Position numbers and translations under genes: made by a program. A model generated the notes under the pieces. That model was not told the origin of the DNA and did not search any database. It worked only from the letters and a program-made list of their open reading frames with translations. This document shows, in pieces, positions 15,397 through 57,963 of a stretch of DNA of 64,000 nt; positions within the stretch are counted from its first letter, which is position 1, and every line of letters starts with the position of its first letter. This DNA comes from Octopus sinensis (lineage: Eukaryota): the NCBI RefSeq assembly GCF_006345805.1, contig NC_043018.1, forward strand, positions 11,098,001 to 11,162,000. Reading direction: 5' to 3'.

Positions 15397-15771
15397 ACCT
15401 CCGAAAGTGGGGGGGGGCCGCCACGTCAAAACGGTTAGAGGAGTAGGGGCCGAAACCGGACGTGGTTCCTCCTGATGATGTCTTGAGCTAACTGGATCCT
15501 GACGAGTTGTAACTCCTGACGAGCTTCTTTCAGTTTCTGTCTACCAAATCCACTTACAAGGCTTTGGTCGGCCCGAGGTTATAGTAGAAGACACTTGCCC
15601 AAGGTGCCACCCAGTGGGGCTGAACCTGGAACCATGTGGTTGGTAAGCAAGCTACTTATCACACAACCACTCCTGTGTCTTAGCTGTTGAAATGATGCAT
15701 TATGGAATTCCACATTATGACAAGATTTTAAGGAACACAATGCTTCAGTAATCTGTGGGTTTCCATTTTAG

Positions 15772-16373: not shown

Positions 16374-16427
16374 AATAAAAATTAAATAAAATTTCAGACC
16401 AAATCTTTTAACATTTTCCATTTTATT
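16374..16427. terminator. Convergent polyadenylation signals
   Basis: Plus-strand AATAAA at 16374-16379 and 16385-16390; minus-strand AATAAA at 16422-16427. Confidence 0.5.
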
Positions 16428-16714
16428 CCCACACAAACACACACACTTGTTTCAATGTATCATCATCATTATAATGTCTGCTTCTCCATGCTTCCATGAG
16501 TTCAATGGGATTCATTGAGACAAAGTTTCTATGGCTGGATGCCTTTCAAATGCTTAACTCTCACCTGTCTCCGAGCAAGGTAATAATTTCTCCATGATCA
16601 GACATGTTTTCACAGAAGACTGGAAATGAAAGACACCACCTGTATGACAATGCTATTTACAACTGTCATGTGTCATCAGGAGAAGGTTACACACACACGT
16701 ATAATGTCTGTGAT

Positions 16715-17038
16715 TCAAAAATCATAACATTTCTTCAAGATGTCTACTACAATGTTCATATCCATTTTTGTCACAATCCGAACATTGCTTGCTTTGCCCA
16801 TTCTGTTTCTCCAGTCTGGTACCATTTGACCTCTTGTTATAGATCCATCTAGTTCTACTTCCGCATAAAGTTCCACACTGTCTAACACACACTGATCGTT
16901 CATGATAGCAGCCACAGTTAGTTCATCACACAATATATAGCTTTGGTCTTTGTCTATCCGTTCCATTGTACTTTTGTAGATTTTTTGCATAAAGGCAGCT
17001 TTCTTGCCAGGAAGTGATAGCTGATTCTTAAGAAAAGA
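16715..17038 (-). CDS. Nucleoside hydrolase terminal exon 6b ([21 protein letters not shown]...ILCDELTV...KKCYDF*)
   Basis: ttttttttcag acceptor, phase 0, open for 107 aa to a stop. Minus-strand AATAAA at 16422-16427. Confidence 0.88.
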   Translation of the reverse strand, partial: SFLKNQLSLPGKKAAFMQKIYKSTMERIDKDQSYILCDELTVAAIMNDQCVLDSVELYAEVELDGSITRGQMVPDWRNRMGKASNVRIVTKMDMNIVVDILKKCYDF

Positions 17039-20000
17039 CTGAAAAAAAAATTCGAAAGAGATAACAGAAATGAGCTTCTTTGCATGAAGTGCACTACAAG
17101 CGGTCAAGAAAGAGTAAAAGAGAGGACTGAGGGCAGCCATGAGTCAAAGACAGCAAAGAAAGTAACAAATACATGGTTTGCACACAAGATACAACACAAA
17201 AAGCCTGAAAAATAAACAGTAAAAAAGCCATAAAAAGAAAGGGTATATGGGTATGTCAGGAGTAGTGTTGGTGAATTTTGGGAAGCATGGAATCTTTGAG
17301 GCTTGTGTAGTGTCCTGACAGCTTTCATAATTCTGAGTGTATAGAAATTTTTTCATAAGTCATAAATGCTAAAATGATTTTCATGTTTATATATATATAT
17401 ATATAATATATATATATATACTAGCAATGCATCCCGGTGTTGCCTGGATGTTATGACTTACAGCCACATTGTATTATTTGTTTCTTTCTTATGGGCAGAA
17501 TCAGCACTCAAGGAATGTGAAACAAACAACTCTTCTTTATAAACTTGTTTTTCGGTCATTTTGTGAAGAACAATGCTGAAATTGTTGACACCAAAAACAT
17601 GTAGAATGGCAGCTTAAATTAGAATGAAATCCTAATATTGCCCTCAAAATGACTTACACTTACGGATTTAAAGAATTGGATGACGTATGAGGATGTATAG
17701 GTATCTGCATTGCAGAAAGTAAGGTACATGGAAAGAAAGCTGCTTCATTGTGAAAAGCATCATCTCTAATGTTTGGGCAGACAGCACACTTCAACATGTG
17801 TTAAGTGAAATGCTTCTGGGTAAACTATGTTTTGCATAAGCCAAGTATTGAGAGAATAAATGAACAAGTCATCTGCACTGCTAACTTGTGAGCATGTGAC
17901 ATATAGTTGTCCATGAGAAAAGCAGGGTAGTTGTAAATTGAGACCCATAATTTTTAAAGTTTGATCCTGGGCTTTGTTGATTGTCATAGCGAAGCATAAT
18001 CGCGCCAGGAACTGGAGGCACTTGAACTGAAATGGCACATTTGAAGGAATGAGGAGCATGCATGGAATGTATGCAATCTCTTCTCGATGACAGCCAGCAA
18101 TAATGGTTGCTTGTAGGACATGACTTGTCATTGGAGATACAGTCAATCTTGTACCATTGCATAGTTGTGGTGGATCGAAATTCCTCAAGAGCATGATAGG
18201 TGCACCTTTCTTTAGGAACAACTAATGCAGTGGCAGTCCTGTGGGTTGTAGAGAGAGAGAAATTCAACTGGATGCTCAACAGTGGCATGTTCATTTATGG
18301 TAGTATCAATGGAAACAAACGTTGAAGCATCTCCAGGTAGAATGTGGGGGAGTTCATGGATTATTTTATCAATGCTTTCATTTCAAGGTGTTAAAATAGC
18401 TCTATTTGTGAACCATGCTATGTTTTTGAAGTTGTGTTGCAATGTGAGAAATACATTTTCTTTAAGCTCAGCCAATGTAGACACCATGTGCCCATATTGC
18501 AGCACATGCTGTTGCAAGATGTTATTCAATGGTAAGGCACCAATTCAAATTTGTCTATGTTGATGAAAGAATTCCTCAGCTAAGGGGTCATTGTAGAGGT
18601 GAGCTCACATATTGCTGCTTAATGAAAGCTGACAAACAAACCTCCACAGAGGTGAAAACTTCAGACACACATGGATGCCATCAGCTCGTGTACCCTGTAG
18701 TATGACTGGTAATATTTGAAATCCCCTGCAAGAACAACAGTTAAGCCCCCCACCCCTATAATGGCAGTATTGTTTCTAATATCCCTTAGCGGCTTATCTA
18801 GGGCTTCTAGTGCATCATGGTGTGCCATTATGCATTCATCCCAGTCAATAAGTGTAATTTAGAGCAAAATCTCTGCCGTCAGTGATCGTTTTGAAATATT
18901 ACATATTTGGGCATCGCTGAAGTGAGTTTTCCTGAGCACAAATAGAGGCAGTTTTCTTTGTGGCCCTTGTTTGAGGAGATAAATGAGAATGTCTTCATTT
19001 TGGCAGCATGGCTGAAAAGAGTGAACAATTAAGGAACATATAAAATGGAAGACATAGCAATTTGAAGTTGTGCATTGTATAATTTGATTTTTTAGTAACA
19101 AATGAAAAGATATGCAAAAATTAATATGTCAATTTGTATGCTGCTATTTATGAGAAGAAGCGGTAAACTGTGAATGATCTGGCTTTACTCTGTCTTGATA
19201 AGCATAATGCATTCTGTTAGTTGATATATAGTGGAGTGGATTACTGGCTTAATGGAAGTTATTGTTTGTCCAGAAGTGAAGTGGGGGCGGGGAGGGTTAC
19301 AATTTGCATGAAAGTGATTTGTGTTCTCAAGAAGGATCACAAACTATGTATTGTTTCATGGAGTAAAAAGGGGTTAATATGATTTTGGCCAGAAATCATG
19401 TTTTCAAAATTATAATTTCCCCCCTCCCCATCGAAATTTCCTAATTTTGAACTGTTTTTCGAATTTTGTTTTTTTATGCAAGTGATAAAATACAGAGATT
19501 ACGAATGTGGGAAATATAATTTGTTTTTGAAAATTTAATTTTTCTGAAAGAAATATTAAATGCCCCTTCCCCTACCTCGGTCACCCATCAGCTACCTGCT
19601 TTCAGGCGAAATTGAAATCTCCTGTATGGAAAACAGAAATGTAGGTAAATTGAAGAAAGAAATAAGTAAATGGTGGTGGGGGTGGGGGTATGCAAATGTC
19701 ATCTCAGACATGCTAGAAACAACAGGTAAAGGACAGGATTTCTGAGATAACCTGCTTGTATGTTTAAATGGAAAATCAGGTTTTGGAATATGCACATCAC
19801 AAACAGGAATGATAGAATAGGAAAAGGTAATTTCCATAGAATTTGAGCTGTAATTTATTGCACAGCAAAAAATAACATAATTCATACAGAACTTTAACTG
19901 TGTGCCAAAGGAAGTTACTTTTGCATACCTTTTGTAATTCTAAAGGAAGAAAAAGTAGTGTAGTTGTAATATGTTAACAGCAGAAGGTCTCCGTACATTT

Positions 20001-20493
20001 TAATGAGAAATTGAAAGACAAAGATAATGCCAAATTCTATGCATGTGGGAAACATAGGACGAAAGTGAAAATGACCTTAAAATTGTACGACATGACCTCA
20101 TTTCTGGGGGTTTGGCTACTCCTTTTCTCCTGCTTTCCCCCTCTCTTTGTGTCGCTTTCTTTCACCTTCACCTATAGAACATACAGTATCAATTTTGTGC
20201 TGGCTTTCTTTCACTTACAACAATAGAACATACATAGGGTATGAAACACCAGCATCTCCCTTTCACCCATCTTTCAACTTCTATAGAAACTTGTTTCCTG
20301 TCTCTGTTTCTTTCTCTTGTGTCTCTATCTTTTTCTCATTCTGTGTTTCACTTGGTCATTCTGTAAAAATTAATTTCTTTAAGCTTGAAGAGAGCAGAAA
20401 TTGAAAGAAAAGCGAAAGTGAAAAGGGGAGAGAGAGAGCAGAGAGTGGAGGAAATGAGGTGAAAGATGTATGTACATGTATATGAAATGGATT

Positions 20494-20524
<31 letters not shown>

Positions 20525-23500
20525 AAGAGAGAGAGATAGAGTGAGTGAATGGAGGTGTGTGTCGTAATGATGGATGCCTTTTAAGGTAGACACTCATATA
20601 GAAAATGTGACGTCATCGTCGTTGTATAAAATATTTCCGATATTTGAGTTATGGAAAAGATTATAATTTTAAGTTTTTGTAATGGAAATATGTCAATGAA
20701 CATAAAGTTTAGTTGGTAGTGGAAATAGTACTGAATCTTTTGATACCCCATACATCAAAATTGGCAACTCGGTTTTAGAATGCATAAGGAACATATGCAC
20801 ACACACACACACACTTGTTTCAATGTATCAACATCATCATCATCATAAAGTTCACTCTTCCATGCTTGCATCAGAACAATGAGATTCATGTTTTCCCAGA
20901 AAACTGGAAATGTAAGAGACCATTTGTATGACAATGTCATTGTATATAATCGTCACGTAACATCAGAAGGGTATGCATGCATGTATAGTGTTTGTGGTTT
21001 AAAAATCATAACATTTCTTCAAGATGTCTACCACAATGTTCAGATCCATTTTTGTCACAATCTGAACATTACTTGGCTTGCCTGTTATGTTTGTCCAATC
21101 TGGTACCATTTGACCTCTTGTTTTAGATCCATTCAGTTCTACTTCTGCATAAAGTTCCACACTGTCTAACACACACTGATCGTTCACGATAGCTGCCATA
21201 GCTAGTTCATCACACATTACTGCATAACGTTGGCGTGCCTCTGCCTGTTTCATTGCATTTTTGAAGACTTTTTGCATAAGAGCAGTTTTCTTGCCAGGAT
21301 GAATTAGCAGCTTTTCAAAAAAAGACTATAAAAAGAAAATTCAAATACGATAATAGAAATGAGATTTTTGTACAAAGCGGTTGTAAAAAAGGGTAAAAGA
21401 GGGGAGAGAAAGTAGTCATAAGCAAAAAGAAAGAAAAACAGCAATGGAAGTGAGAAATACAGGGAAAGCACACAGGATAAAACATGAGACGGAGAAGTAA
21501 ACAGTAAAAAAGCCATAAAAAGGTAAGGGTATATGGGCATGTCAGGAGTAGTGTTGGTGAATTTTGGGAAGTATGGAATATTTAAAGGATGTAGTGTTTT
21601 GTCAGCTATCAACAGACATAAGGAGTATATTCTATACATGATCTGATCAAAAAGTATCTGGACTGTTGCCATAGTAACAAAGCTAAAGCACACAGAGTGA
21701 AGCCGCTTGGTACAGATTAACCTTGAACTCTGCAGTGCATGTGCACCAAATTTTAACATTCTCGATGACTTCCATTGTTTACAGCAGTGCTTGGAAGGAA
21801 GGTGTGTAGGATGTGAAAGTTAAGCAGAGAATCTGCATCAAATTTTGCCAAAAGTTTTCAAAAAGTTTTCATCATTCTCAGCAGAATCAAGGAGATCTTG
21901 TGCAACTAAAACCCAAATGTCTTTTTGGTCAGCTGAAAGTAGTTGTAGCACAAACTTGGCAGACACACGTCTCATACTCAAATCTTCATTGATAATGGAC
22001 TGAAATGAACCATAAATAATCTGCACATCCTCTGATAACTCACGGATGGTGATTTGACAATTTCCCCTCACAGCGACACACACATCTGCAACATTTTTCT
22101 CAGTTCTGCTGGTTGCAGGTCTCCCAGAGCATTCATCAATATCAACATTTTTTCAGCCATCTTGGAAACGTCTGAACCACTTGTACACTTGTGTGCAACT
22201 CATACGCTTTCTACAACTTTGTGTAGACCTCTGAGCAGGTATTGCCATGTCAATTTTCTTTGTCATGGTCAATGTGACGAACACACGCTACATACCTTCC
22301 TTCCAAGCACTGCTGTAAGCAGCAGAAGTGAGTGAGAACATCAAAACTCAGTGCTCATATGCACAGCAGAATTCAAGGTCAATCTTTGCCATGCAGCTTC
22401 ACTCTGCATGCTTTAGCTTCATTACTATGGCAACAGTCTGGATACTTGCTCATCAGACCTTGTATATGCTGAAATTATTTTTTTTTTTTCTAAGTGTGTC
22501 TAAGGGTGGTAGAGGTATAGACTTCATAGGAATGGTCTGAGTTGGATCCTTTAGGAATGAATCTGGTATGGCTGCATGGTTGAGAAATTCACTCATCGTC
22601 TACTTACAAGGACAAAGTATTGGTCATCTGAAGTCTGTGGTGGAAGGTTTTTGCCTGAGATGCCCTGCAGTAGAACTGAAGCTAATTGACAACCGCACCA
22701 ACAGATCCGTTTCCATTATTTGATTCCTGAATTTCTGATACTTACTGAAGGTTGCTTTAAATCTTCGCATAGTTCCCATGTTATCAGTGTTATTGGACAA
22801 GAAAGTTTCTTAAGAACAATGCTTGCTGCTTCCGGGTCATTGTAAAAGTTGAACTCAGCACTTCTTGATATGTTGCCAACTCCTGGAATATATATGACAG
22901 AAGAAAAAAACGTCTGTTTAAGTCACTTCATAGCTTTTAGTCACTTTGTAGAGTTTTCATTTTAGATTTATAGCCTGCAAAATGGTTTGGTTATTCCACA
23001 TCCATTTTCACAATATATCTTGAGTGGGAAGGTTTTCTTATATTTGGATATCGTTGAAATAATTATGTGAGTATAATTACAAAGCACAAAGAAGTGTTGT
23101 GTGTGCAGTTGAGAAAGGTGTTGTCTTGATACATAATTATAATAATAGCAATAATGAGCATATGCTATACAGTGCTCAGATGCACAACTCATCAGGAAAA
23201 TAGTAAAAGAAGGAACAGAAAGAAATGTCTAAGTCAAGAAAAAGAGCTATGACAGCCAAAATCGCATGCATAGTACATAGACACATGTAGTGAACAGTAA
23301 AAGGACGATAAAGAGGAAAGGATGCACATCAGGAACTGTGTTGGTGAATTTCAGGAAGCAAGATATATTTGAAGGATGCAGTGTTGTGACGTAAGAACTG
23401 ATCCATGATTCAACAATTCTGTGTGTGAACTCTACACATAATTACAACTGATGTTATAACATGGTTTTTCTAATATTCCTGTAATGAAATTGATGCATAT

Positions 23501-26500
23501 ACTTCACCCTACTTAAAATACCAACATGTCACAATCAAATGAAGAAATCCCTACATGTCATAGGCCATCTGAGGGAATCAGCTTTCTAGAAATAGCAGCC
23601 AAGTTGTTTTCAAATCAGACCTTATTGTTTTGAAAGGGACACATTGGTCTTGGGTGCCCAGTGTCTGGGAAACAAAAGTGATGGTCACAAGACACTTTTA
23701 ATCATATGCATGTTTTATCAGTGCTTTTTTGAGGCAGAAAAATTGAACATAACGTTTAGGCACAGGTGTGACTGTGTGGTAAGAAGCTTGTTTCCCAACC
23801 ACAAGGTTTCCAACCACATGGTTTCAAGTTCATTCCCACTACATGGCACCTTGGACTATAACCTCAAGCTGTCTAAAGCCTTGTGAGTAGATTTGGTAGA
23901 TGGAAACTGTTCCCCATCACTGCTTGAGAATCAACAGAATAAGTACCAGACTTTAAAAAAATATGATTCATTCAACCAAAATTCTTCAAGGTGGTGTTCC
24001 AGGATGGCCACAATCTAATGACTGAAACAAGTAAAAGATAAAAGATAACAAAATGAATATAAAATACAGAATTAAGGTGAATTAAAATAAGGTAAATAAA
24101 AAAAGAAAAGAAAAATATGAAAGTAAGATTGAAAACAAATGAAAGATTACCTTTATAATTTCCGCCCATTATATAGCAACTCTTGAGCTTTGAACCAAAA
24201 TCTGGATCTAAGGTAATTGCAGTGGCTATATTAGTAAGAGGAGCTAAGGAAACAAGATGTAACTCCCCTGAAAAGTAAAAAATGCAAAATCTGTATATTT
24301 TAGTACAAACACATGAAGCAGCAGCCGTCACATATTTAAGATGTGTACAGTTTAGTTTTTTAATATATTTCTGATAGAATGTAGAAGGCAATCACTGTGC
24401 AGCGGAATCTTGTTTGGGAAAAATTTTCCTTCAATAGATTTTGTGTGTGTGTGTGTGTGTGGTGTTTTACACACAAAATCTATTGAAGGAAAATTTTTCC
24501 CAAACAAGATTCCGCTGCACAGTGATTGCCTTCTACATTCTATTGGTGTGGTGTTTTACACACACACACACACACACATTGAGGTGAAGTTCAAGAAATG
24601 TTAAGTGAATACAGAGAAATTTTGCAGTGAACATTTTTAATGTTCTAGAGTAAAGAAGCAGACACATATACATATACATATAGATATAATCATCATCCTC
24701 GTCATTTAACATCCACTTTCTATGCTGACATGAGTTGGGCAATTTGACTGGATCTGGTGAGCCACAAGGCTACAATGGGCTCCAATGTCAGCTTTTGGCA
24801 GTTTTTACAGTTTGATGCCCTTCCTAACACCAACCACTTTACAGAGTGTGTTGAGTGCTTTTTGTGTGTGTGAATGTACCAAGTAACTTGCAAGACAGAA
24901 GAACAAGGAGAGGAAAAGGAAAAAAAACTCACACTGCTAAATGGGGCGTATTTGAGAGGGGATTGAGGGACAAGCACAGGCATCTTGCTATAAAGGAGAT
25001 AGATGGCTAACCTCTGTTATATAGGGAGGTGGATGGGAATAGTAGAGGAGATAAAAGGAAAGTAGTGAAGGAGTGCCAAAGCAAACTCTCCAGCTACAAG
25101 GTGACCATAAGAGAAAATATGAAAAAGATCATTAACAATTAGTTGTTTGCTTATAAGCAATGTGGTTTAGAGTGTTTTAATTTGGATTTTGAACTATAAA
25201 GAAAAATATCAAAAACAAGTTTTCTTGTTATCAATGAACTTTGGAACATTAGCTATCACTACCTGCTTATTGATAGTGAACTGGTACAGAATTGTTACCA
25301 AGTCAGGCAAAATTCTTAGCTGCATTTCATTCATCGTCAGGTTCTGAGGTCAACTTTGCCTTCCATCAATAAAATGAGTACCAGTTGAGTACTAGGATTG
25401 ATTTAATCAAGTTAGCCCCCTCCCCTGGAATTGCTGACCTTGTGCTACAATTTGAAACTGATATTGAACTTCAGTGAGATTTTCTGATTAAGTTTTATAT
25501 TACCGTAAAAACCCATGGAATTTGCAAACCTGTGTAACTTACGCAGGTGATTTTCAGGATAAAATTTGTTAAAAAAGCTTCTACTCATGTAAAATTCGCA
25601 CCCAAAAGTTTTCAGAATTGCCGATATAGCCAGGAGAAAAAGGTTTACAATTTAGTTGCATTTAGCATAATTTCATTTACTTATGATGAGATTTTATTAC
25701 ATTTTCATTAAATAAAAATAATTTCTGTTTAACAGTATCACATTGAAAGCTATTAAATTACAAAGGGTTTGCGTTATTTATAATAAACTTTATTTTACAT
25801 TTCTTGCCCACAAGAGATTATGTCTGATCTTTAGCGTACTGCTGTATGTCTTCTCAAACCACAATCACAGGAAAAGTTGTTGATAAGAATTACCAACAAA
25901 AACAAAGCTGATAAATACACACAGGTATTGCAAATTAAGTTTAATTACCAATAAACATCAGTTTGAATGACACTTTACGCAACCGAGTAAAATATGTAAA
26001 ATATGGCCTGGACCATGATTACCAGCATGAACGTCAGATTTCAAAAGTAGTTAACCATTTAATGGTTTTAGTAAATTTATACAGAAAAAGTAAATATTAT
26101 ACTGTCCAACATAAATAAAAGTCAACATTAGGTGCAGGAGTGGCTGTGTGGTAAGTAGCTTGCTTACCAACCACATGGTTCTGGGTTCAGTCCCACTGCA
26201 TGGCAAGTGTCTTCTACTATAGCCTCGGGCCGACCAAAGCCTTGTGAGTGGATTTGATAGACAGAAACTGAAAGAAGCCTGTCGAATATATGTGTATATA
26301 TATATGTGTGTGTGTGTTTGTGTTTGTCCCCCCAACATCGCTTGACAACCGATGCTGGTGTGTTTACGACCCCGTAACTTAGCGTTTCGGCAAAAGAGAC
26401 TGATAGAATAAGTACTAGGCTTACAAAGAATAAGTCCTGGGTCGATTTGCTCAACTAAAGGCGGTGCTCCAGCATGGCCACAGTCAAATGACTGAAACAA

Positions 26501-27004
26501 GTAAAAGAGTAAAAAGAGTATTATTTTTTCTGTAAAAACCTATTCTGATATTAAATGAGTCAACTTCCAGTATGGATGTTTATGCTTTGTACGTCATTTT
26601 TCAACAAAAAAAATTTCTAAAAAAATTCTGGAAACAATCTCCTCATGTAATTTACGCACCCACTAATGTTTATTTTATTTTTGCAAAAAAAAAAAAGGTG
26701 TGTAAATTACATGGGTTCTACAGTAATTGTTTTTGATAAGCCATGAAAAGTGTCATCAAAAGAGTTGATCTTTAATTAAAATGTTATTTAAATCTCAGTA
26801 GATGCAGTACAGCTGAACAGTTAAGAATTTCGCTTCACAACCACAAGGTCTCAGGCTCAATCTCACTGCACATCAACTTGAGCAAATGTCATTTTTTTTT
26901 AAGAATTTGGTTGATGGTGGTGATGATGATGTTGATGTTAACAATGAAGGTGGTGATGGTAGCAATAACAATGATGACATCAATGATGACTATGATGATG
27001 ATGG

Positions 27005-27072
<68 letters not shown>

Positions 27073-29131
27073 GTGATGGTGGTGGTGGCGGCGGCGGCGG
27101 TGGTGGTGGTGGTGGTGGTGGTGGTGGTGGCAATGACAACAACATCAATTTACCTGGGTTTTGGTTCACGAGATGAATTAAAGCATTTACAGCATGTTCC
27201 TTCTGAAGGTGATCCAAACCCGGTGCTTCACTGTCTGGAACATCTCCCAAACCATCTTTGCCGTGATAATATTGGGCATGCTGGGCTCTTTGCATTAATG
27301 GATACTTACAACCTTGAAACACTGGTATCTGAAACAATATTTTGGTATAAGAATTGAGAGATTGTTTTGCTGGACGTGTGCAATTACTGTTCACCTTACA
27401 CACCTGTAAATCTAAACTGATGAACAAAGGCAAAAACATGGGAGAAGAAGGAATTCCAGGGCTTCACACTCAGGAAAGGAAGGATTGGATATATAGTGGT
27501 TAAGGTTGGGAAGGAAGGATGGGTGCAGTATGAATGATGGAGTGTGCCAGGTGGGCTTTGATGGAGGTTGATACACTATGGCCTAGTTCCAACAAGCAGA
27601 TGCCATTGTAATTGTAAGTAGAAAGGTACAGAGTCAATAGCTACTGTAGTGTTAGTGGTGTTATGGGCTGTGATGAGCTGTGTGGTGTTGGTGGAGGGGA
27701 TTGCAGATGAAGTAGACAGAAGTGAAGACTGCGGGGGCCTGTGGGGCAGCCACGGGGCATGTGTGCACAGGAAGCACATGTGGTCAGTTCAAACAGAAAC
27801 GGCAGCGTGAAAGGACATGTTTATTTCTTGATAGTGATCGCTCATCCCGCCGAGGTCTACAGGTAAGGCCTTTTGTATTTCTTTCTTTTTCTGTTGTCCT
27901 TTCCTCCATCACACTACAGCTACAGAAAGTCTACAGGCTAGAGGTAGGAGTTAATTGGTGAGTAATTAGGGGAGGAAAAGAAGAGCAACATCCCTGGGCC
28001 TTTGGTGGGATGAAAGAAGAAAGTTAAACTGAACGTTGATACTTGAAACAGAGCATGCTCTACTATAGACACCCAAGAGTCAGGTGGTGGTGTTAAACTA
28101 GGTTATCAATTAAATCTATCATCCATGACCAGGTATAATCACCCTGATAAGCTTCCATGCCATTTCTATCTTATAAAGTTTGGGTCAACTTCAAATTATG
28201 ACTGAGGATATTTGCTCAAGGCACTGCACAGTAGATGTCAATCTTGGTACTATATGACTACAGTACATTCACCTATTTGTGTGTATGTACACACACAAAC
28301 ATATATATATATATATACATGCAACCATGGTTCCAGCCTTATGAAAATTTTCAGTGGAAAAACAAAAGTTTGTTACCATCATCTCTATATGGTTGCTTGA
28401 CTTAATAAATATAGCAACAGTGTTTTACAGTACTTAGTGTAGTAGTTATATAGCTGTACAATAATATGGAGGAGTTTTAAAAGTCTGCCTCAAGCCTACA
28501 GGTTCAGTGAGGTCAGAATTTGTTTGAATGTTCAAGGAGTTTAGACTGAAAGTACAAGATCCCCTTTTGTTCCTGAACAGGACACTAATCTGTCACTGTG
28601 TTAAACTCCAGCTATCGCTAGTAGTAATTTTCACAAATGGGAAATGAAATGCTTTTCTCAAGGACACAACATGCCACCTGGTTCAGAAACCCATGATATA
28701 GTTAAGTAGATGGAAATGGTGAAATAAAGGCATTTCCAATTTTTATTTTTAAGATAAAAAAAATGGAAATACCTTTAGCAGAAGCTCATCAGAATGATTG
28801 CACTTGTTCTTAAGTGGCTGATTAAATAGATCACCCCATTTAATATCACCATCTGGTTCTTAGGTACCTATAGCTGAGTCCCCTCTGCTCTGATCATATG
28901 CTCTGAGTATAACTTTCTCCTTTAATTCTCGCCAGTCTCAGAGGCCCAGTAAAAAGGCCAGGGACGTTGTTGCTCTTCCTTTTCTGTTTAGTACAAAGTA
29001 GAGAACAGCTAGCCTTGGTAACATATACTATGCTTTTACTAATTGTTTTAGATGCCTGTGTAGTCGTGAGCAGACAGAGACACCTCAGCCTACTCTCCCT
29101 CGACCCAGAAAGACATACAAAATGCAACAGT

Positions 29132-29192
<61 letters not shown>

Positions 29193-30437
29193 TTAGAGAT
29201 GTACCAGTACTCATTTATAGCTGAGAAGACTAAAGCAATGTGAAATACCCTTATTCAAACACACAACATGCCACCTAGTTCTGGAATTGAACACACAACC
29301 TTGTTTGTCATTATGAGCTGAACACCCTGAAGTCTTTGTTATTTGTTGAGAAAGGAGGGAAATAAAAGAATACTTACATCTTGTCTATTGGCTACCTTCA
29401 GTAACCGTAGCGTGTTCAAACTAGTATTCATAACAGGGGCATTGCCCTGAACAGTTGTTATGGCAACAACATCTACACTGCTGTCCTTACCCAGGGCCAT
29501 CAAAATAGCCTGAGCATCATCGATACCAGGGTCTGTATCAATTATGATTTTCTTATTGCTGGTAAAAGAAAAAAACAAAAGGAACAAGAAATGAAATAAA
29601 ACCAAATGAAAAAGGTGCAAGCATGGCAGTGTGGTTCAGAAATTTGTTTCCCAAACACACATTTCAGGTTCAATCACACTGTGTGGTACCTTGGGTAAGT
29701 GTTTTCTACCATGTCCGGTAAGTTCATTGTCATCAATTCACTGCAGGGAAAGTTCACCATCATCAATTCACCACAGGGAATCTCCATTTGACAATTTTTA
29801 AAAACCTTTTAATTACAAATTTTCTATAATAATTTTCAATTTTATCATAGCTTTTTAATGTCAAACAGGATTTTGAATAATATAAATTTGAATTTTGTGT
29901 TGATTTATGTTGTAAAGAAGTGTGAATTGAAAGTTAAGTTTATTTTTCTTCTTATTTAGTACATACTATGTTTTAACCCAAAAGGTAAAATCCCTGATTA
30001 CATGTTTTGATCTCCATTACTTTCAGTTTTTTCCTCAGTAAAATAGTGTTTAACTGTTAATGGTGAGATACTATGGATATATTTTCTTGGTAAACTTTCC
30101 TCGCGGTGAACTTCCTTCACAGTGAACTTATCTGTAATCCTTTTCTATATTTCTCACGAGTAAACCAAGGCTTTGTGAGTTAATTTGGTAGACAAAAACT
30201 GAAAGAAGCCTGTTGTTTATGAGTGTGTGTGTGTGTGTATGTGTGTGTGTGTGTGTGTATGTTTGTATATACTTTGGGTATGGTAGATGAGTTCAGCAAA
30301 AATTTGGATTCAGATGAATATGGTACTTAAGTTGAGGCACTAGAATTTAGTATGGTATTATCCATACAATTTCAAAGTAAGGTGATTAAAATCAAAATAA
30401 GTTTAGAATTATACTCCCTAATATTATTATTATTATC

Positions 30438-33899: not shown

Positions 33900-34021
33900 T
33901 GCGCACACAATGAAATATAATCATAAAATTGATAAAATACTAACGAATTCATTCGACTGATGGTGTTAATTACACGAGGCAGGTTATGTAACGTTCTCTT
34001 CGTTATTCCGAGAAGTCGCAT
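16715..34021 (-). CDS. Nucleoside hydrolase (IUNH family), whole gene. Isoform A = exons 1-5 + 6a (1014 nt, 337 aa; 314 aa from second Met). Isoform B = exons 1-5 + 6b (1011 nt, 336/313 aa).
   Basis: All introns are GT-AG with matching phases (2,0,1,1,0). The spliced protein has the family motifs [46 protein letters not shown] and TRGQMVPDW. Confidence 0.93.
17421..19090 (-). mobile_element. Decayed Helitron (PIF1 helicase half) with intact 3' terminus
   Basis: [42 protein letters not shown]; upstream IWDE and AGDF motifs. 3' hairpin CATCCAGG-CAACA-CCGGGATG followed by CTAG|T at 17421. Confidence 0.9.
19854..19859 (-). terminator. Candidate poly(A) signal for the exon-6a isoform
   Basis: First minus-strand AATAAA downstream of the 6a stop (about 1.14 kb). 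An ATTAAA also occurs at 19999-20004. Confidence 0.3.
20999..21325 (-). CDS. Nucleoside hydrolase terminal exon 6a ([21 protein letters not shown]...VMCDELAM...KKCYDF*)
   Basis: ttttctttttatag acceptor, phase 0, open for 108 aa to TAA. Confidence 0.88.
   Translation of the reverse strand, partial: SFFEKLLIHPGKKTALMQKVFKNAMKQAEARQRYAVMCDELAMAAIVNDQCVLDSVELYAEVELNGSKTRGQMVPDWTNITGKPSNVQIVTKMDLNIVVDILKKCYDF
21637..22462 (-). mobile_element. Internally deleted mariner (DD34D) element in hydrolase intron 5
   Basis: TA TSDs at 21635-36 and 22463-64; long TIRs (c..g.tctgat...aagtatc..gactgttgccatagtaa). [10 protein letters not shown]...MRRVSAKFV transposase fragment. Confidence 0.88.
22746..22882 (-). 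CDS. Nucleoside hydrolase exon 5 ([24 protein letters not shown]...[12 protein letters not shown])
   Basis: tattccag acceptor, TCA|gtaagt donor, 137 nt, phase-0 end. Contains the AEFN motif. Confidence 0.95.
23130..23440 (-). mobile_element. Old CR1 3'-end remnant; related remnants at ~21340-21615 and ~17050-17360
   Basis: Aligns to the 3' end of the CR1 at 34441-35190 (aaggatgcagtg, ggaagca, tacagtgctcag.tgca..caactcatc, AAT tail). Confidence 0.65.
24151..24267 (-). CDS. Nucleoside hydrolase exon 4 ([15 protein letters not shown]...YIMGGNYK)
   Basis: tactttttcag-type acceptor, AAAG|gtaatc donor, 117 nt. Confidence 0.95.
24374..24543. repeat. Perfect inverted repeat, 75-bp arms with a 20-nt loop
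   Basis: 24374-24448 is the exact reverse complement of 24469-24543. Confidence 0.95.
25503..26723. mobile_element. Tc2/pogo-like non-autonomous element with nested SINE
   Basis: TA|ccgtaaaaacccatg...catgggttctacag|TA imperfect TIRs. Confidence 0.55.
26985..27130. repeat. Compound (GAT)n(GGT)n(GGC)n microsatellite just inside hydrolase intron 3
   Basis: Direct reading. Confidence 0.95.
27154..27328 (-). CDS. Nucleoside hydrolase exon 3 ([11 protein letters not shown]...[11 protein letters not shown]...LVNQNP)
   Basis: ttgtttcag acceptor, CCAG|gtaaat donor, 175 nt. Contains the HGxDGLG motif. Confidence 0.95.
29378..29558 (-). CDS. Nucleoside hydrolase exon 2 ([14 protein letters not shown]...ANRQD)
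   Basis: ttttaccag acceptor, GAT|gtaagt donor, 181 nt. Contains the Ca2+-binding DxDxxxDD motif. Confidence 0.95.
30750..32050. repeat. Near-identical tandem duplication, period 646-647 bp
   Basis: 30810-31400 repeats at 31456-32047; units are bounded by (GT)n. Confidence 0.92.
32360..32730. repeat. ~160-bp tandem unit (about 2.3 copies) with inverted partial copies at ~31272-31392 and ~31918-32039
   Basis: Shared ggatcttgtgaattttc...ttttcccctcaaattactttataatcgtaatgtatgcc. Confidence 0.7.
32928..33214. mobile_element. MULE-like MITE with internal inverted repeats
   Basis: TIR ggtactac/gtagtacc; 9-bp TSD ttccaatca/ttccaatcg; ~55-bp internal inverted arms. Confidence 0.75.
33811..33898. repeat. 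(GATA)n microsatellite in hydrolase intron 1
   Basis: About 22 perfect units. Confidence 0.97.
33945..34021 (-). CDS. Nucleoside hydrolase exon 1 ([26 protein letters not shown]), with in-frame ATGs at 34021 and 33952
   Basis: ATG AAT TC|gttagt is a phase-2 donor that joins ag|C AAT AAG of exon 2 to give [14 protein letters not shown]. The upstream ATG is in an aaaATG context. Confidence 0.8.
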
Positions 34022-35888: not shown

Positions 35889-37156
35889 TGCCAGAAGGAA
35901 TAAGAGAAGACGACACAACCGTAAAACGTAAAGTGAAAGGTTTTATTTAGATGTTAGTAGAGTGTGTGTCCGTGAGTACAACATAAGTACATACATAATA
36001 AGAACAATAATAGACAGACCGTCAAGCATACAATAATGTGTATGTGTGTACAAACAAGGGTGTATGCGTGTGAGATAAAATACAGAGTATAGAAATGTGT
36101 CTATAACAGAACGCTAGAAGTTCAGACACAAGATGAAGATAAATACCAGTTCGTAGTAAGGTACACAATAGTAGAATCTCTGTACAAGAAGTTGAGGTTA
36201 CAAGGCAGAGCCGGTTGAACACATGTCGTGTAAGCGGTTGTGGCTGCTATGCTGTGCCGGGTTACTTGGTACAGAAGGTACTCGCAGGTTGAGCTTGCTG
36301 TTAACCATGGTGAAGTATTCACAAACAGCGTGAAGTTAAACCAAAACGAAGTTGTTGGCATCGATAAGATGAAGGCGACGGTGGTGGAGGCGTCGTTAAG
36401 ATGAAGACGATGAAGGTGGAGGTCCGAAAATGCTGCTAGTGTTGTCTGTTGCTGGAACTGGCTGTGTCGCTGGGTGCTCTATGGTCAGGGGTTAGTCCTT
36501 AGAAAGACTAGAACCAAAGACGAGTTACGATGAATCGCTGAAGTTTTTATAGTGAAACGAGCTTAGCGTGTGAATATCTTCGTGCACTTTTGGGGTGCAC
36601 AAAGCAATCACTCACTAGCCGTTGCTTTAATAATCCAGAATCTCTACTAGTCAGAAACAAACAGGACGCAGACGGAAAAATATACATATAACTACTTTAT
36701 TCTCTTTCTTGGTAAACAATAACAATAAATGTGTTATCTGATGTCCTAGGTTCGGGCGCGCACCGCTATAAGTTAATAGATTGTAATATTTACAATCTTC
36801 AGCCCCAAAACAGAAAGGATTCAAGATGGCGTCGAACAATGGAGACGATGTTGGTCTGCAACAATTTTGGTTAAAAGTCTTCGGCCAAAGGACTGCTAGA
36901 ATCAGTTCAGACGGTGAGAATATATGCGTGACTGCCGCCTTCAATCGCTGGGTCCCAAGTCATTGGCTGCTGCTGCTAGCGGTCAAACGTTCTACGACCC
37001 CCTTGCCTCGCTAACTGCTACGTAGGCAATAGGGTCGTGCTACCGGTGGTTCGCGCATGCGCGAGAGGGCCCTTCCTTTCTGTGCCTTGGTGAAGGCACC
37101 AACACGCGCGAAATACAAATGGTCGGTGCGCGAGCGCGCCTTATAATATCACTACA
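35889..37156 (-). mobile_element. CpG-rich, solo-LTR-like segment (uncertain)
   Basis: The minus strand begins TGTAGTG and ends CTGGCA, with TATA-like ctataaaa and AATAAA followed by a pyrimidine-rich U5-like tract. No matching TSD found. Confidence 0.35.
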
Positions 37157-37423: not shown

Positions 37424-38535
37424 TATATTTTTACATTTGACGGATATTTTCCTAATCTTTGTTGTTGTTGACACAACATTTCGGCTGATACACCCTCCAG
37501 CCTTCATCAGGTGTCTTGGGGAAATTTCGAATCTGGGTTCTCATTCCCAAGTATGGATTCAGGACATCCGTATACCTAAAGCCGACTTTCACTGGACGAT
37601 ACCTTAACTTTAATTCCCACCATCCATACAGTGTAAAGAGAGGGATTGCTAAAACATCGAGCAATGAATATAAGTAGCGATCGTGATACCCACCACGAAG
37701 AAATTATCAAGCTCAGTAACAATCTCCCCAAATACCCCCAAAACATCAAGCTCAGTAACAATCTCAACAAATACCCCCAAAACATACTATCTACTCCAAT
37801 TATGAAGAAAAGAGAGATGAAACCAATAAACTGTCTACAGTCTGTCTACCCTATGTGAAAGGACTCTCCGAAAAGATACAAAAATTATGCGGCCCATATG
37901 ACCTCAGGACAGTATTCAAGAGTAATACTTCGCAAATGTCTCCTTCGGGTAAAACCACCAATAGAAGAGAATATGACCAAAAACTGCGTGTACTCCATCC
38001 CATGCAGCTGTGGTAGGTTATACAAAGGCGAAACATGCCGCCCCCTCAAAATAAGGGTAGAGGAACATCACAAAGCTGTGACACGAAGAGATATTGATAA
38101 ATCGGGTATAGCTGATCATGTATAGGAAAATGAAGACCACCTCCCCCTATGGGATGAAGTTAAAATAATAGACAGAGAACACTATTGGAAAATACTGAAA
38201 AAAATAAGCAACACATATGCTAGGACACAACAGCCTCCTAAGCAGACCGAGTGCAGATATGAATAGAATATTGGAACCGGTATTAAGGAAGGATAGGAAA
38301 ATATTAGATTTATAAGCCCTAAAATTCACTCCATAATTGCCTACAGACAAATGGCGCAGTGGTTAAGAGCGTGGAATAACAACAACCTCGAAAAATACCT
38401 TAGGAACAAGAACCCAGATTCGAAATTTCCCCAAGACACCTGATGAAGGCTGAAGGGTATATCAGCCGAACTGTTAACAACAAACAAGATGATGACATGT
38501 AAATAATGTACACAATTCCTCATCTCTTATAATAT
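37424..38535 (+). mobile_element. Penelope-like element: RT thumb + GIY-YIG endonuclease, 3' pseudo-LTR and inverted 5' pseudo-LTR
   Basis: KPTFTGRYLNFNSHHP; CVYSIPCSCGRLYKGETCRPLKIRVEEH. ~37424-37550 is the reverse complement of the pseudo-LTR at ~38400-38510. Confidence 0.9.
37470..37515 (-). ncRNA. Minimal type I hammerhead ribozyme in the Penelope pseudo-LTR (degenerate second copy at 38435-38475, +)
   Basis: GACAC-CUGAUGA-aGGCUG(gagggugua)UCAGCC-GAAA-UGUU-GUGUC. Helix I, core and helix II are all present. Confidence 0.75.
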
Positions 38536-55420: not shown

Positions 55421-56211
55421 CCCATTGGGCTGAAGCAAGCTACTTACCACACAGCCACTCCTGGTTCTATGTTACATACTTCTTGTTTTAAAGTGATCCT
55501 AATTAAAATCTTCCTTCAAAAGTTCATCATCATCATTGTTTAACGTCCTCTTTCCATGCTAGCATGGGTTGGATGAATGACTGAGGGCTGGCAAACCAGA
55601 TGGCAGCACCAGGCTCCAGTCTTGATCTGGCAGAGTTTCTAAAGCAGGATGCCCTTCCTAATGCCAACCACTCTGAGAGTGTAGTGGGTGCTTTTACGTG
55701 CCACCAACACAGGGGCCAGTCAGGCGGTACTGGCAGTGACCTTGCTTGAATCTTTTTACACATGCCACCAGCACAGGTGACGTTGGTAACGATCACGCTC
55801 AAATGGTGTCTTTTACGTGCCACTGGCACGGAGGCCAGGTAGCCACTCCGGCAACGATCACGCTCAGATGGTGCTCTTTAAGGCAACGCTGGTAACGATC
55901 ATGCTCGAATGGAGCCTTTTAAGTGCCACTGGCATGGAAGCCGCTTATTTCAAACAGCAAATGACAAAGTTATTTTACTAAATTCTTCGTTATTTTCAAA
56001 ATTAATTGAAACAAAGGCAGTGAATTTCATCAAAAATATGGTAACATAGGCCCTGGAGTGGCTGTGTGGTAAGTAGCTTGCTTACCAACCACATGGTTCC
56101 GAGTTCAGTCCCACTGCATGGCACCTTGGGCAAGTGTCTTCTACTATAGCCTCAGGCCAACCAAAGCCTTGTGAGTGGATTTGGTAGACAGAAACTGAAA
56201 GAAACCTGTTG

Positions 56212-56242
<31 letters not shown>

Positions 56243-57963
56243 TTGTTCCCCCAACATCGCTTGACAACCGGTGCTGGTGTGTTTATGTCCTTGTAACTTA
56301 GTGGTTCAGCAAAAGAGATCGATAGAATAAGTACTAGGCTTACAAAGAGTAAGTCCTGGGTCAATTTGCTCGACTAAAGGTGAATAACAAAAGGGTTAAA
56401 TGGCACTATATGAACTTTAATTAATTCTGACTGAAAACATTTTTTTCTTATTCATCTTGTTCCAGGTAAAATATGAACTAAGTTTCTGGGGAACAAGTTT
56501 ATCTTTTTAACCAGTAGAAAAATAAAAACAACAAAAATAAACAAACACAAAAGCCAACATTCAGGACTTTAAATATTTGGTCAAATTTATTGCTTACGAA
56601 AGAAAGAAAAATTATGAAAATTTCAATCAGGTATTTTAATCTAAAATAATTAGCAAAGAAAATGTGAAAGTTTTTTTTCTTTTAAAAAGAGTACAAAAAT
56701 AATAAGTAGACCACGCATTCTTTTCTTTTCAAAAACTAGAAAACCATTGACAACATTCAACAAATAAAACCATTTATAAAGAGCTTAGTTAATCCTCCCA
56801 TGCCCTCCCCAGTTAGGAAAATTTCAATCGTATTTTTGTTAAAAATATAAGGAAAAAAACAAAGAAAACAAAAATAACATTTTTAAAGCTTCAATTTTAT
56901 TTGTTTTAATTAAAAAAAAAACAACAAAAGACAAATATTAGATCTAATTTTAAACTATTATTTGAATCTGTTCTCTTTTTCTTTCTTTTCATATTTAGTT
57001 TATCTAAAAAGTACATTTTTATGCTTACATTTTAAAACAGACTTGAGCTCAAAAGATTCAAGGAGCAGAGCAAAATATAAGGCTGGACTAGTTTATTTTA
57101 GTAAAGTCGACATGCTTAACCCTTTGAACTTGCAAGTACACTGTCTCTGACCCTGGTAGGAAACGCAGGCAGCCACATAGTTGTGGGTTTATGACTGAAA
57201 AATAACGTTTCTGCTAATTAGCAAGCCATAAACACCAAATCATGTGACCACCGGCTTTTTCTTCTAAGGGTATGGTCAAATGAAATCATCTACATAACAT
57301 CCTCTTCTCCATGCTTACATGGGTCAGATGGAATTCATTGAAGCAGATTTTATATGACCACATGACTTTCCTGTTACCAATCCTCACCTGTCTCTAATAA
57401 TTCCTCATTGCCAGACACATTTCTCACAGAAGACAAGAAATGAACAACATTGCTTGTATGACAGTGATGCCAGTCCACAACATCATGTGATGACTAGACA
57501 AGGGTACAAACACGCACACACACACACACACATATATATTTATACAAAGGCCTTCTTTCAGTTTCCGTCTGCCAAATCCACTTGCAAGGCATTGGTTGGC
57601 TTGAGGATACAGAAGCCCAAGGTGCCATGTAGTGGGACTGAACTTCAGACCACATGATTGGAAAGTAAGCTTCTTAGCTGCATAGCCATGCCTGCACCTT
57701 GCAGGTTCAAACAGTTAGCTTACAATGAACAAGAAATGGCTGATTAATAACTGCAGCAACCAAGTGTTTTGAGCACAGCAACGCTGACAAATTGTCTTGA
57801 ACACAAAATGATATTCCATTTATTGTTTTTTTTTTGTTTTTTTTTGCATTTCCCATAATCCCAAAAGAAGAAACAAAGTTAGTACAGTGAAAAATTTTTT
57901 ACAAATCATTATATATAGAATGGCACACAATAAAGTATCCCAGGTTCTGTAGTACAGTGTAAA

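Follow-up and report, generated by a model that had tools for sequence, protein, structure and literature searches.

Tandem duplication of the last coding exon and its probable use as two alternative C-terminal ends in a nucleoside hydrolase gene of octopuses

The 64,000 nucleotides (nt) of Octopus sinensis DNA described here, positions 11,098,001 to 11,162,000 of contig NC_043018.1 in the RefSeq assembly GCF_006345805.1, are called the window throughout, and coordinates are counted from its first letter. On the minus strand, from about 41.7 kb down to 16.4 kb, the window carries a gene for which a full-length protein search gave 100% identity to the Octopus sinensis "inosine-uridine preferring nucleoside hydrolase-like" gene, and the last coding exon of this gene is found twice, as exon 6a and exon 6b. 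The proteins ending in exon 6a and in exon 6b match the Pfam family PF01156 with 292.6 and 292.2 bits, respectively, at a curated cut-off of 34.2 bits, and these matches cover profile positions 1–293 of 297. The DXDXXXDD fingerprint of Ca2+ and ribose binding is encoded by exon 2 and reads DTDPGIDD; its aspartate columns are invariant in an alignment of 57 sequences. The third Ca2+-coordinating aspartate, about 230 residues downstream of the fingerprint, is that of a CDE motif encoded by both last exons, and this column (D267 / D272) is invariant as well, with aspartate in 100% of 129 outgroup sequences. By these sequence features the gene can be assigned to the nucleoside hydrolases (PF01156) of the metazoan type, in which a cysteine-aspartate pair replaces histidine-aspartate.

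The exons were located by translation of the region and by tblastn with recognisable pieces of the hydrolase, and all of them lie on the minus strand. Exon 2 extends over 29378..29558 (acceptor accag/C, donor GAT/gtaagt), and exon 3 (27154..27328) and exon 4 (24151..24267) were placed by tblastn together with their splice contexts. Exon 5 (22746..22882), the last constitutive coding exon, was found from the sequence and by tblastn and ends with a phase-0 donor, TCA/GTAAGT, after base 22746. The proximal of the two last exons, exon 6a, has its coding part at 20999..21325 and comprises 108 codons and a TAA stop (21001-20999), the cysteine-aspartate pair being codons 38-39, while the coding part of the distal exon 6b at 16715..17038 comprises 107 codons and a TGA stop (16717-16715) with the pair at codons 37-38. 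Both frames are open to the end, which reads ...KKCYDF. Exon 6a is preceded by a pyrimidine tract and the acceptor tttttatag/TCT at 21325, exon 6b by the acceptor tttttttttcag/TCT at 17038 with cag and an unbroken U9 tract; both acceptors are in phase 0, which matches the phase of the exon 5 donor, and that of exon 6b is the stronger of the two. The two predicted proteins thus have residues 1 to about 205 in common and continue into homologous C-terminal thirds, which are identical at 75 of 108 residues (69.4%, tblastn).

A repeat search detected the two last exons as parts of collinear direct repeats at a constant offset of about 4285 nt. Block A, with exon 6a, spans 21611-20798 and block B, with exon 6b, spans 17327-16430 on the minus strand; the edges were taken from blastn and MAFFT alignments, and the blocks align throughout. 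The intron part of block A (21326..21611), which contains the duplicated end of intron 5, the pyrimidine tract and the TAG acceptor of exon 6a, is 78% identical to its counterpart in block B (17039..17327), recognised by alignment and splice context and carrying the U9 tract and the CAG acceptor of exon 6b. The coding parts are 85% identical (73% in codons 1-36, 91% in codons 37-108) and the 3' flanks 81%. About ten insertions or deletions, one of them of 88 nt, separate the flanks of the two blocks vs a single one of 3 nt, which is in frame, in the coding sequence. The duplicated 3' flank of exon 6a (20798..20998), delimited by the alignment and by comparison with Octopus bimaculoides, ends at a (GT)n microsatellite. 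Behind exon 6b lies a 3' untranslated region (UTR; 16400..16714) with AATAAA and a GT-rich downstream stretch, as found by a hexamer scan and by comparison of the repeats. Searching the whole window with tblastn gave no further copy of exons 2-5, and in the orthologous loci that were fetched only exon 6 was duplicated and no other extra hydrolase exons were found. The initial annotation had described a block of about 1 kb occurring twice, with canonical phase-0 acceptors, a common TCT start, frames open to the same CYDF end and 75 of 108 identical amino acids, and had read it as the duplication of an exon rather than a second gene; the block is confirmed with the borders given above, the details of the exons are exactly as stated, and the reading holds for the 64 kb of the window as well as for the orthologous loci.

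The arrangement is not confined to one assembly. Two exons 6 at a distance of about 4.25–4.29 kb are present in two assemblies of O. sinensis, in Octopus vulgaris and in O. bimaculoides, that is, in four assemblies of three species; the scaffold of the older O. sinensis assembly is 99.75% identical to window positions 35245-15397. Argonauta hians has a single exon 6, and so has the cuttlefish Acanthosepion pharaonis, where 10 kb of downstream flank were included in the search. For dating, intron sequence was compared over the 300 nt that precede each exon 6. The intron sequences sort cleanly into 6a and 6b orthologs: the divergence K is 0.125 between the 6a introns of O. sinensis and O. bimaculoides and 0.133 between their 6b introns, and every pair of a 6a with a 6b intron gives 0.24–0.29 (about 0.26). 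As the paralogous intron divergence of about 0.26 compares with an orthologous one of about 0.13, the duplication predates the split of these two species, taken as about 34 million years (My) ago, and should be roughly twice as old. By this comparison of sequences it is younger than the split from Argonauta and arose in a common forebear of the three Octopus species.

The 3' ends of the two exons have had different histories. Exon 6b is followed by AATAAA at 16427-16422, 288 nt past the stop codon, with the GT-rich stretch downstream of it. Behind exon 6a of O. sinensis the homology breaks off at the (GT)n run at 20798, and the next 1 kb or so is free of canonical hexamers; the first ones encountered are ATTAAA at 20004 and AATAAA at 19859-19854, so that both hexamers proposed earlier as candidate poly(A) signals, at 19854 and 16422, do exist in the sequence. 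In O. bimaculoides the match between the 6a and 6b flanks goes on beyond this point for 370 nt or more, including AATAAA at the homologous position (position 38343 of the locus sequence of this species, here L002), where the 6b copy has ATTAAA. Since homology behind exon 6a runs further in O. bimaculoides, the duplication must originally have reached past the repeat edge at 20798/16430, and since hexamers stand at homologous positions behind both exons there, what was first copied was a whole terminal-exon unit, poly(A) signal included. The comparison of window positions 20593-20798 and 19526-19917 with L002 38235-39545 shows that the lineage of O. sinensis and O. vulgaris has lost the 6a poly(A) signal in a rearrangement at the microsatellite; a 150-nt piece in the same region, 20745-20593, is inverted relative to O. 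bimaculoides. As a consequence of this loss 6a transcripts of O. sinensis and O. vulgaris must end at least 1 kb further on, with a long 3' UTR, or at the 6b site.

Several observations indicate that neither copy is decaying. O. bimaculoides, at a distance of about 34 My, has retained both open reading frames (ORFs) together with the two acceptors and their pyrimidine tracts. A family profile built from the 129 outgroup hydrolases scored exons 6a and 6b of O. sinensis with 88.3 and 89.8 bits, those of O. bimaculoides with 90.2 and 95.0 bits and the single exon of Argonauta with 95.0 bits. In a neutral simulation the observed nucleotide differences between orthologs (22 for 6a, 33 for 6b) were placed at random in 1000 trials; a stop codon arose in 53–71% of them, trials free of stops scored 63–72 bits, a loss of 18–28 bits, and at most 0.3% attained the observed score, in either direction and for either exon. 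When the simulation was carried out for the paralogs, 0 of 1000 trials did so. The differences between 6a and 6b sit in columns which are variable in the family (Mann-Whitney p=6e-4), and they are symmetric, each copy holding the family-consensus residue about equally often, hence neither copy is the decaying one. For codons 37-107 of exon 6b the ratio of replacement to silent divergence (dN/dS or omega) between the species is 0.25 (p=0.012), and the 3' UTR of 6b differs between O. sinensis and O. bimaculoides by K=0.071, below the intron value of 0.13. The pairwise dN/dS of 6a vs 6b is 0.80, a value which cannot separate decay of one copy from constraint on both. Taken together these sequence comparisons argue that both copies have been kept under selection since before the split about 34 My ago, in line with the earlier proposal of selection on both frames, for which retention of ORFs and acceptors and the profile fit relative to the neutral simulations are the relevant evidence.

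The copies have also exchanged sequence. Exons 6a and 6b at window positions 21002-21325 and 16718-17038 and their counterparts at L002 37799-38122 and 42048-42368 were compared for signs of gene conversion. The silent divergence (dS) between 6a and 6b of O. bimaculoides is 0.06–0.08, below the dS of orthologs. Both O. sinensis copies read NIVVDIL, and the fourth position is a glutamate in both O. bimaculoides copies (NIVEDIL) and in Argonauta (KIIEDLL). From the low paralogous dS in O. bimaculoides and the change of glutamate to valine common to the O. sinensis copies it follows that the 3' two thirds of the exon have occasionally been converted; the first third is distinct in both species. 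Recent conversion was also considered as the cause of the similarity of the 3' two thirds within O. sinensis and was rejected, because dS there (0.195) equals dS elsewhere.

Gene models in RefSeq, ENA and UniProt join exons 2-5 either to 6a or to 6b in three species, as would be expected of the alternative last exons of one upstream set that had been proposed in the initial annotation. In O. sinensis the C-terminus of XP_036368218.1, XP_036368220.1, XP_029649592.1 and XP_029649594.1 is identical to 6a and that of XP_036368219.1 and XP_029657176.1 to 6b. In O. vulgaris CAI9738689.1 ends in 6a and CAI9738686.1, CAI9738687.1 and CAI9738688.1 end in 6b, and in O. bimaculoides XP_014774668.1 has the 6a ortholog and XP_014774676.1 as well as UniProt A0A0L8IEV3 have the 6b ortholog. 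For the annotation of O. vulgaris alternative splice forms were added only through updates by the PASA software from alignments of Iso-Seq and RNA-seq data (PMC10700109). Given this procedure, the one 6a and three 6b models mean that at least the 6b junction is supported by transcripts, and probably both junctions are. The arrangement is already encoded in the public models of three species and is consequently not new to annotation, which corrects the earlier remark that no description of it was known for animal nucleoside hydrolases; literature searches yielded no paper that discusses alternative last exons for any nucleoside hydrolase, or for cephalopods. One review names the 6a isoform of O. 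bimaculoides, simply as an animal hydrolase (PMC10526354), and the supplementary files of a hydrolase review contained no octopus sequence.

In a further RefSeq model, XP_036355901.1, which belongs to scaffold VCDQ01004248.1 of the older O. sinensis assembly, the opening 14 codons of 6a run on into the remainder of 6b (...GKKT/AFMQKIY...). Around the join, which lacks a GT donor, the two exons have almost the same sequence, and the model looks like an artefact of a chimeric read or of gene prediction; it could also reflect a recombinant allele.

It is proposed, with a probability of roughly 85%, that the locus is one hydrolase gene with a tandemly duplicated last exon, the copies 6a and 6b being used as alternative ends of exons 1-5. 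As the comparison between species shows, a unit of at least 1.3 kb was duplicated in tandem, made up of the final ~290 nt of intron 5 with the acceptor, the last coding exon with its 3' UTR and poly(A) signal, and a piece of the DNA beyond, and transposon sequence now parts the copies by about 3.5 kb. Judging from the anatomy of the locus and from the public models, the exon 5 donor at 22746 would be spliced either to the proximal acceptor at 21325 (6a) or to the distal one at 17038 (6b). As each exon has its own stop codon, the two are mutually exclusive by construction. The choice would then be a competition between splicing and 3'-end formation at 6a, on the one side, and transcription through 6a followed by splicing to 6b, on the other; the 6b route would have the stronger U9-CAG acceptor and the conserved AATAAA in its favour.

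Some points weigh against this proposal. The use of both junctions rests on gene models made by others and on the stated method of one annotation. The loss of the ancestral poly(A) signal of 6a in O. sinensis and O. vulgaris makes it less certain for 6a than for 6b that these two species use the exon today. The omega of the whole exon between orthologs is 0.56 for 6a and 0.70 for 6b, neither of them significantly below 1, compared with 0.27 for exons 2-5; both exons thus evolve fast, and part of this may be relaxed constraint. Gene conversion blurs comparisons of rates. Finally, the excess of replacements in codons 1-36, described below, fits positive selection and fits equally well the poor constraint on this segment in the whole family, where the entropy is 3.5–4 bits.

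The same high omega values and the missing 6a signal in O. sinensis would suit an explanation in which just one exon is truly used and the other is an unspliced relic, its models being artefacts of placement by protein homology, and the implausible hybrid XP_036355901.1 shows that a pipeline can err at this locus. This is nevertheless improbable: both ORFs, acceptors and pyrimidine tracts have stayed intact across about 34 My, all four copies score 88–95 bits where random mutation would mostly have broken the frame or would have cost the score found in the simulation, forms with both ends are among those assembled from O. vulgaris transcripts, and three independent annotation pipelines agree. 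Still less can be said for a separate downstream unit to which 6b would belong, be it a second, partial hydrolase gene or a transcript driven by a transposon. A Helitron-like helicase remnant does lie on the same strand just upstream of block B, yet no other hydrolase exons were found around 6b, neither in the window, which covers 43 kb on its upstream and 16 kb on its downstream side, nor in the orthologous loci that were fetched; a C-terminal piece of 107 residues cannot fold alone and is nonetheless constrained at family-invariant positions; and the phase of the 6b acceptor fits exon 5, with all public models joining 6b to exons 2-5. That the two blocks are haplotypes of one locus assembled in tandem has a negligible probability, as the copies differ by 15–27% with many indels, far above allelic variation, the arrangement and spacing recur in both O. 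sinensis assemblies, in O. vulgaris and in O. bimaculoides, and intron trees separate the 6a and 6b orthologs; the haplotig reading that had been named at the outset as a possible refutation is thereby rejected by recurrence in three species.

What distinguishes the two ends is concentrated in a short segment. Within the first 36 codons lie 24 of the 37 replacement differences between 6a and 6b of O. sinensis and 18.5 of 24 in O. bimaculoides, corresponding to a replacement rate of 0.27–0.36, at or above the rate of the paralogous introns. Between the species, codons 1-36 of 6b show 15 replacement and 0 silent changes (p=0.038). Exon 6a is one codon longer than 6b and the Argonauta exon, and since both of these are without the extra codon, the indel is an insertion in 6a. 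Of the 18 residues before the cysteine a mere 4 are identical between the O. sinensis isoforms, and the cysteine-aspartate pair and every invariant column of the family are unchanged in both. The motif reads ...VMCDE... in 6a and ...ILCDE... in 6b and aligns to histidine-aspartate of the Leishmania enzyme and to cysteine-aspartate of the C. elegans enzyme (Protein Data Bank, PDB, 5MJ7), the cysteine before the last Ca2+-binding aspartate standing opposite the catalytic histidine of trypanosomatid enzymes. Group III, the metazoan nucleoside hydrolases, has a cysteine in place of His241/Trp260 just before the last Ca2+-binding aspartate, and this cysteine aids activation of the leaving group (PMC8910321). 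By its motif the octopus protein would accordingly be placed with these cysteine-type hydrolases. Its beta3-alpha3 loop reads YYHGKDG, with a histidine as in group I.

In hydrolases studied so far the helix and loop before this pair form a flexible lid of the base pocket which sets base preference; the active site is completed by helices alpha8 and alpha9, of which alpha8 becomes ordered at its C-terminal end only on binding of a base-like ligand, and in E. coli RihB two tyrosine substitutions in alpha8 raised kcat/KM for inosine 50-fold (PMC8910321). AlphaFold2 models of both octopus isoforms had a mean predicted local distance difference test score of 91.2 and predicted template modelling (TM) scores of 0.88–0.89, with an identical order of structural elements. 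The helix before the cysteine-aspartate pair is 19 residues long in the 6a model and 16 in the 6b model, and confidence dips to 77 in the loop that follows in 6b. A fold search with the 6b model gave TM scores of 0.8–0.9 to solved hydrolases. According to these models both isoforms keep the predicted nucleoside hydrolase fold. Because the differences concentrate before the invariant cysteine-aspartate pair, the swap alters the lid of the base pocket and not the catalytic pair. An exchange of the C-terminal third of the active site including a Ca2+-ligand aspartate had been suggested earlier; this aspartate is indeed encoded by exon 6, and it is, like the preceding cysteine, invariant in both copies.

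By analogy with the enzymes cited, a difference of the isoforms in substrate preference or kinetics is conceivable without being the expected outcome, and the earlier idea of two enzymes with different catalytic properties is plausible at the level of sequence. A tentative and rather doubtful extension goes further: the choice of the last exon would re-tune the nucleobase pocket, the helix and loop before the cysteine-aspartate pair would be under diversifying selection in both copies, and two hydrolases of different base preference or kinetics would be switched by coupled splicing and polyadenylation, possibly by tissue. It may also be, and this too is a minority view, that both ends are used and the protein differences are near-neutral, the benefit being regulatory and lying in two 3' UTRs and poly(A) sites with different stability, localisation or translation. 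The conservation of the 6b 3' UTR past the neutral level would fit such a regulatory benefit, as would the rearranged 6a flank with its lost poly(A) signal, by which the two ends now differ strongly in their 3' UTRs. The likeness of all catalytic and invariant residues, the position of the divergence in the most variable part of the whole family and the high ortholog omegas point the same way. It is less easily reconciled with the clustering of the replacements in the helix and loop which line the base pocket of studied hydrolases (PMC8910321), with 15 replacement changes and no silent one in the first 36 codons of 6b, with an indel of one codon and a different predicted helix length just before the catalytic cysteine, and with a conversion which homogenised the 3' two thirds in O. 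bimaculoides and left the first third distinct.

The remaining features of the gene concern its 5' end and its repeats. Four alternative first coding exons, all on the minus strand, add N-termini of 2 to 71 residues, and several of them are paired with either last exon in public models. The one at 41616..41705 (MYVMCV...), found by tblastn of the N-terminus of a model, is used in RefSeq isoform X3 (XP_036368220.1). A very short one at 39498..39502, consisting of ATG GG before the donor GTAAGT (MG/NKK...), was recognised from a candidate scan, the sequence and public models; it is used in isoform X5 and in the 312/313-residue forms of O. bimaculoides and O. vulgaris. The exon at 36149..36361 (MPTTSF..., 71 residues; tblastn 100% over 71 residues) belongs to RefSeq models of 383 residues with 6a and 382 with 6b, and that at 33944..34021 (MRLLGI...; tblastn 100% over 26 residues) to models of 337 residues with 6a and 336 with 6b. 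The long N-termini of the public models may be real or may be just calls of the longest ORF. Listing ATG...GT candidates left exon 1 undecidable, and the four first exons were taken from the public models instead.

The spacer between the blocks (17328..20797) is mostly common to O. bimaculoides, window positions 19526-15696 aligning to that species at 90%. At 17766-18828, on the minus strand like the gene, it contains degraded ORFs of a Pif1-type helicase with matches to Pfam PF21530 and PF05970, the remnant of a Helitron-like transposon. Capture of the exon by this element was considered and is not required, since in O. bimaculoides the duplicated unit continues beyond the poly(A) signal in the manner of a simple segmental duplication. 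Intron 5 holds a transposon-like insert (21633..22466), 20 nt upstream of block A, which was delimited by self-blastn and by alignment of O. sinensis with O. bimaculoides and has inverted repeats of about 185 nt that are 80% complementary. O. bimaculoides has the insert as well, which makes it more than about 34 My old. Its ORF remnants, which gave no match in Pfam, we take to be mariner-like. A local repeat of about 100–190 nt with 72–80% identity is common to intron 4 (23198-23388) and the intron parts of both blocks (21388-21601, 17109-17315); 23198-23388 was dismissed as a third copy of the block, being confined to this short repeat without an exon remnant. An old interspersed repeat (16462-16696), 69% identical to a copy at 57285-57513, 40 kb away, makes up most of the 3' UTR of 6b. 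The 6a copy of this repeat has the deletion of 88 nt, which is found in O. bimaculoides too and is for this reason older than the split of the species. A dispersed family of repeats of about 150 nt, 67–79% identical and in both orientations, occurs in introns and flanks at 23756-23909 and at least ten other places, for instance 15531-15646, 26128-26270, 47046-47358 and 56047-56197. The window is very rich in microsatellites, and inverted repeats near the 6b acceptor (I6, I9), considered as RNA structures which could guide the choice of exon, are short and no more than about 71–75% complementary. Both in Argonauta (21847-29430 of its locus sequence, L001) and in O. bimaculoides (L002 47644-52371) the hydrolase gene is followed downstream by a gene for an aldo-keto reductase in the opposite orientation, indicating conserved synteny.

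The arrangement is not a new principle, as it belongs to a well-described class of duplicated exons, and its value is that of a worked case and not of a discovery. It offers a clean and datable example of a duplicated terminal-exon unit turned into a pair of alternative C-termini in a metabolic enzyme, the swapped part covering the lid of the active site. What is added here is the dating (Octopus-specific, more than 34 My), the constraint on each copy, the poly(A) signal which was copied and then lost behind 6a, the conversion, and the mapping of the differences to the base-pocket lid. If the isoforms differ mainly in the helix of the base pocket, the locus would be a natural experiment on specificity in the little-studied cysteine-type group. 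What nucleoside hydrolases do in animal physiology is poorly understood (PMC10526354).

Among solved structures that of the C. elegans enzyme (PDB 5MJ7) comes closest in sequence (E=5.6e-47), with the same CDE motif; like group III enzymes of this type the octopus protein has the DXDXXXDD fingerprint and the cysteine before the last Ca2+-binding aspartate, and its predicted fold compares with a TM score of 0.83–0.86. The literature searched reports no alternative C-terminal exons for nematode or frog hydrolases. Plants also have several hydrolase forms in one organism, and in Arabidopsis, Physcomitrella and maize these isoenzymes come from separate genes (PMC10526354). There whole genes have been duplicated, whereas in the octopus the duplication is limited to the last exon and promoter(s) and exons 1-5 are held in common.

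Two metabolic enzymes provide a further parallel. In pyruvate kinase the kinetics are switched between PKM1 and PKM2 by duplicated, mutually exclusive exons. Ketohexokinase (KHK-A/C) is switched in its kinetics in the same manner (cited in PMC9741552). As in the octopus gene, homologous duplicated exons lie beside the active or ligand site in these enzymes and the catalytic residues are unchanged. Their exons are internal, so that exclusivity must be enforced, whereas the octopus exons are terminal and exclusivity is automatic and coupled to 3'-end formation; and different kinetics have been proven for KHK and PKM and are a possibility for the octopus isoforms.

The closest relatives are the tandem duplicated exon substitutions of the C-terminal type, as in TPM1, Tm1 and lev-11, where homologous terminal exons of one gene are used one at a time. 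In human, 77 of 236 such substitutions swap C-terminal regions, a strong enrichment, and duplicated 3' exons occur in the tropomyosin genes of all three of human, fly and worm (PMC9741552). Octopus exons 6a and 6b are adjacent, on the same strand, in the same phase and both conserved, they are joined one or the other at the level of gene models, and as is usual in this class most changes are peripheral and spare the core and the ligand-binding residues. In contrast to most human events, which are more than 500 My old, the octopus pair is young and arose within the octopods. What it swaps is a third of a globular catalytic domain and not a tail, a helix or a disordered region, and in one lineage one of its copies is now without a poly(A) signal of its own.

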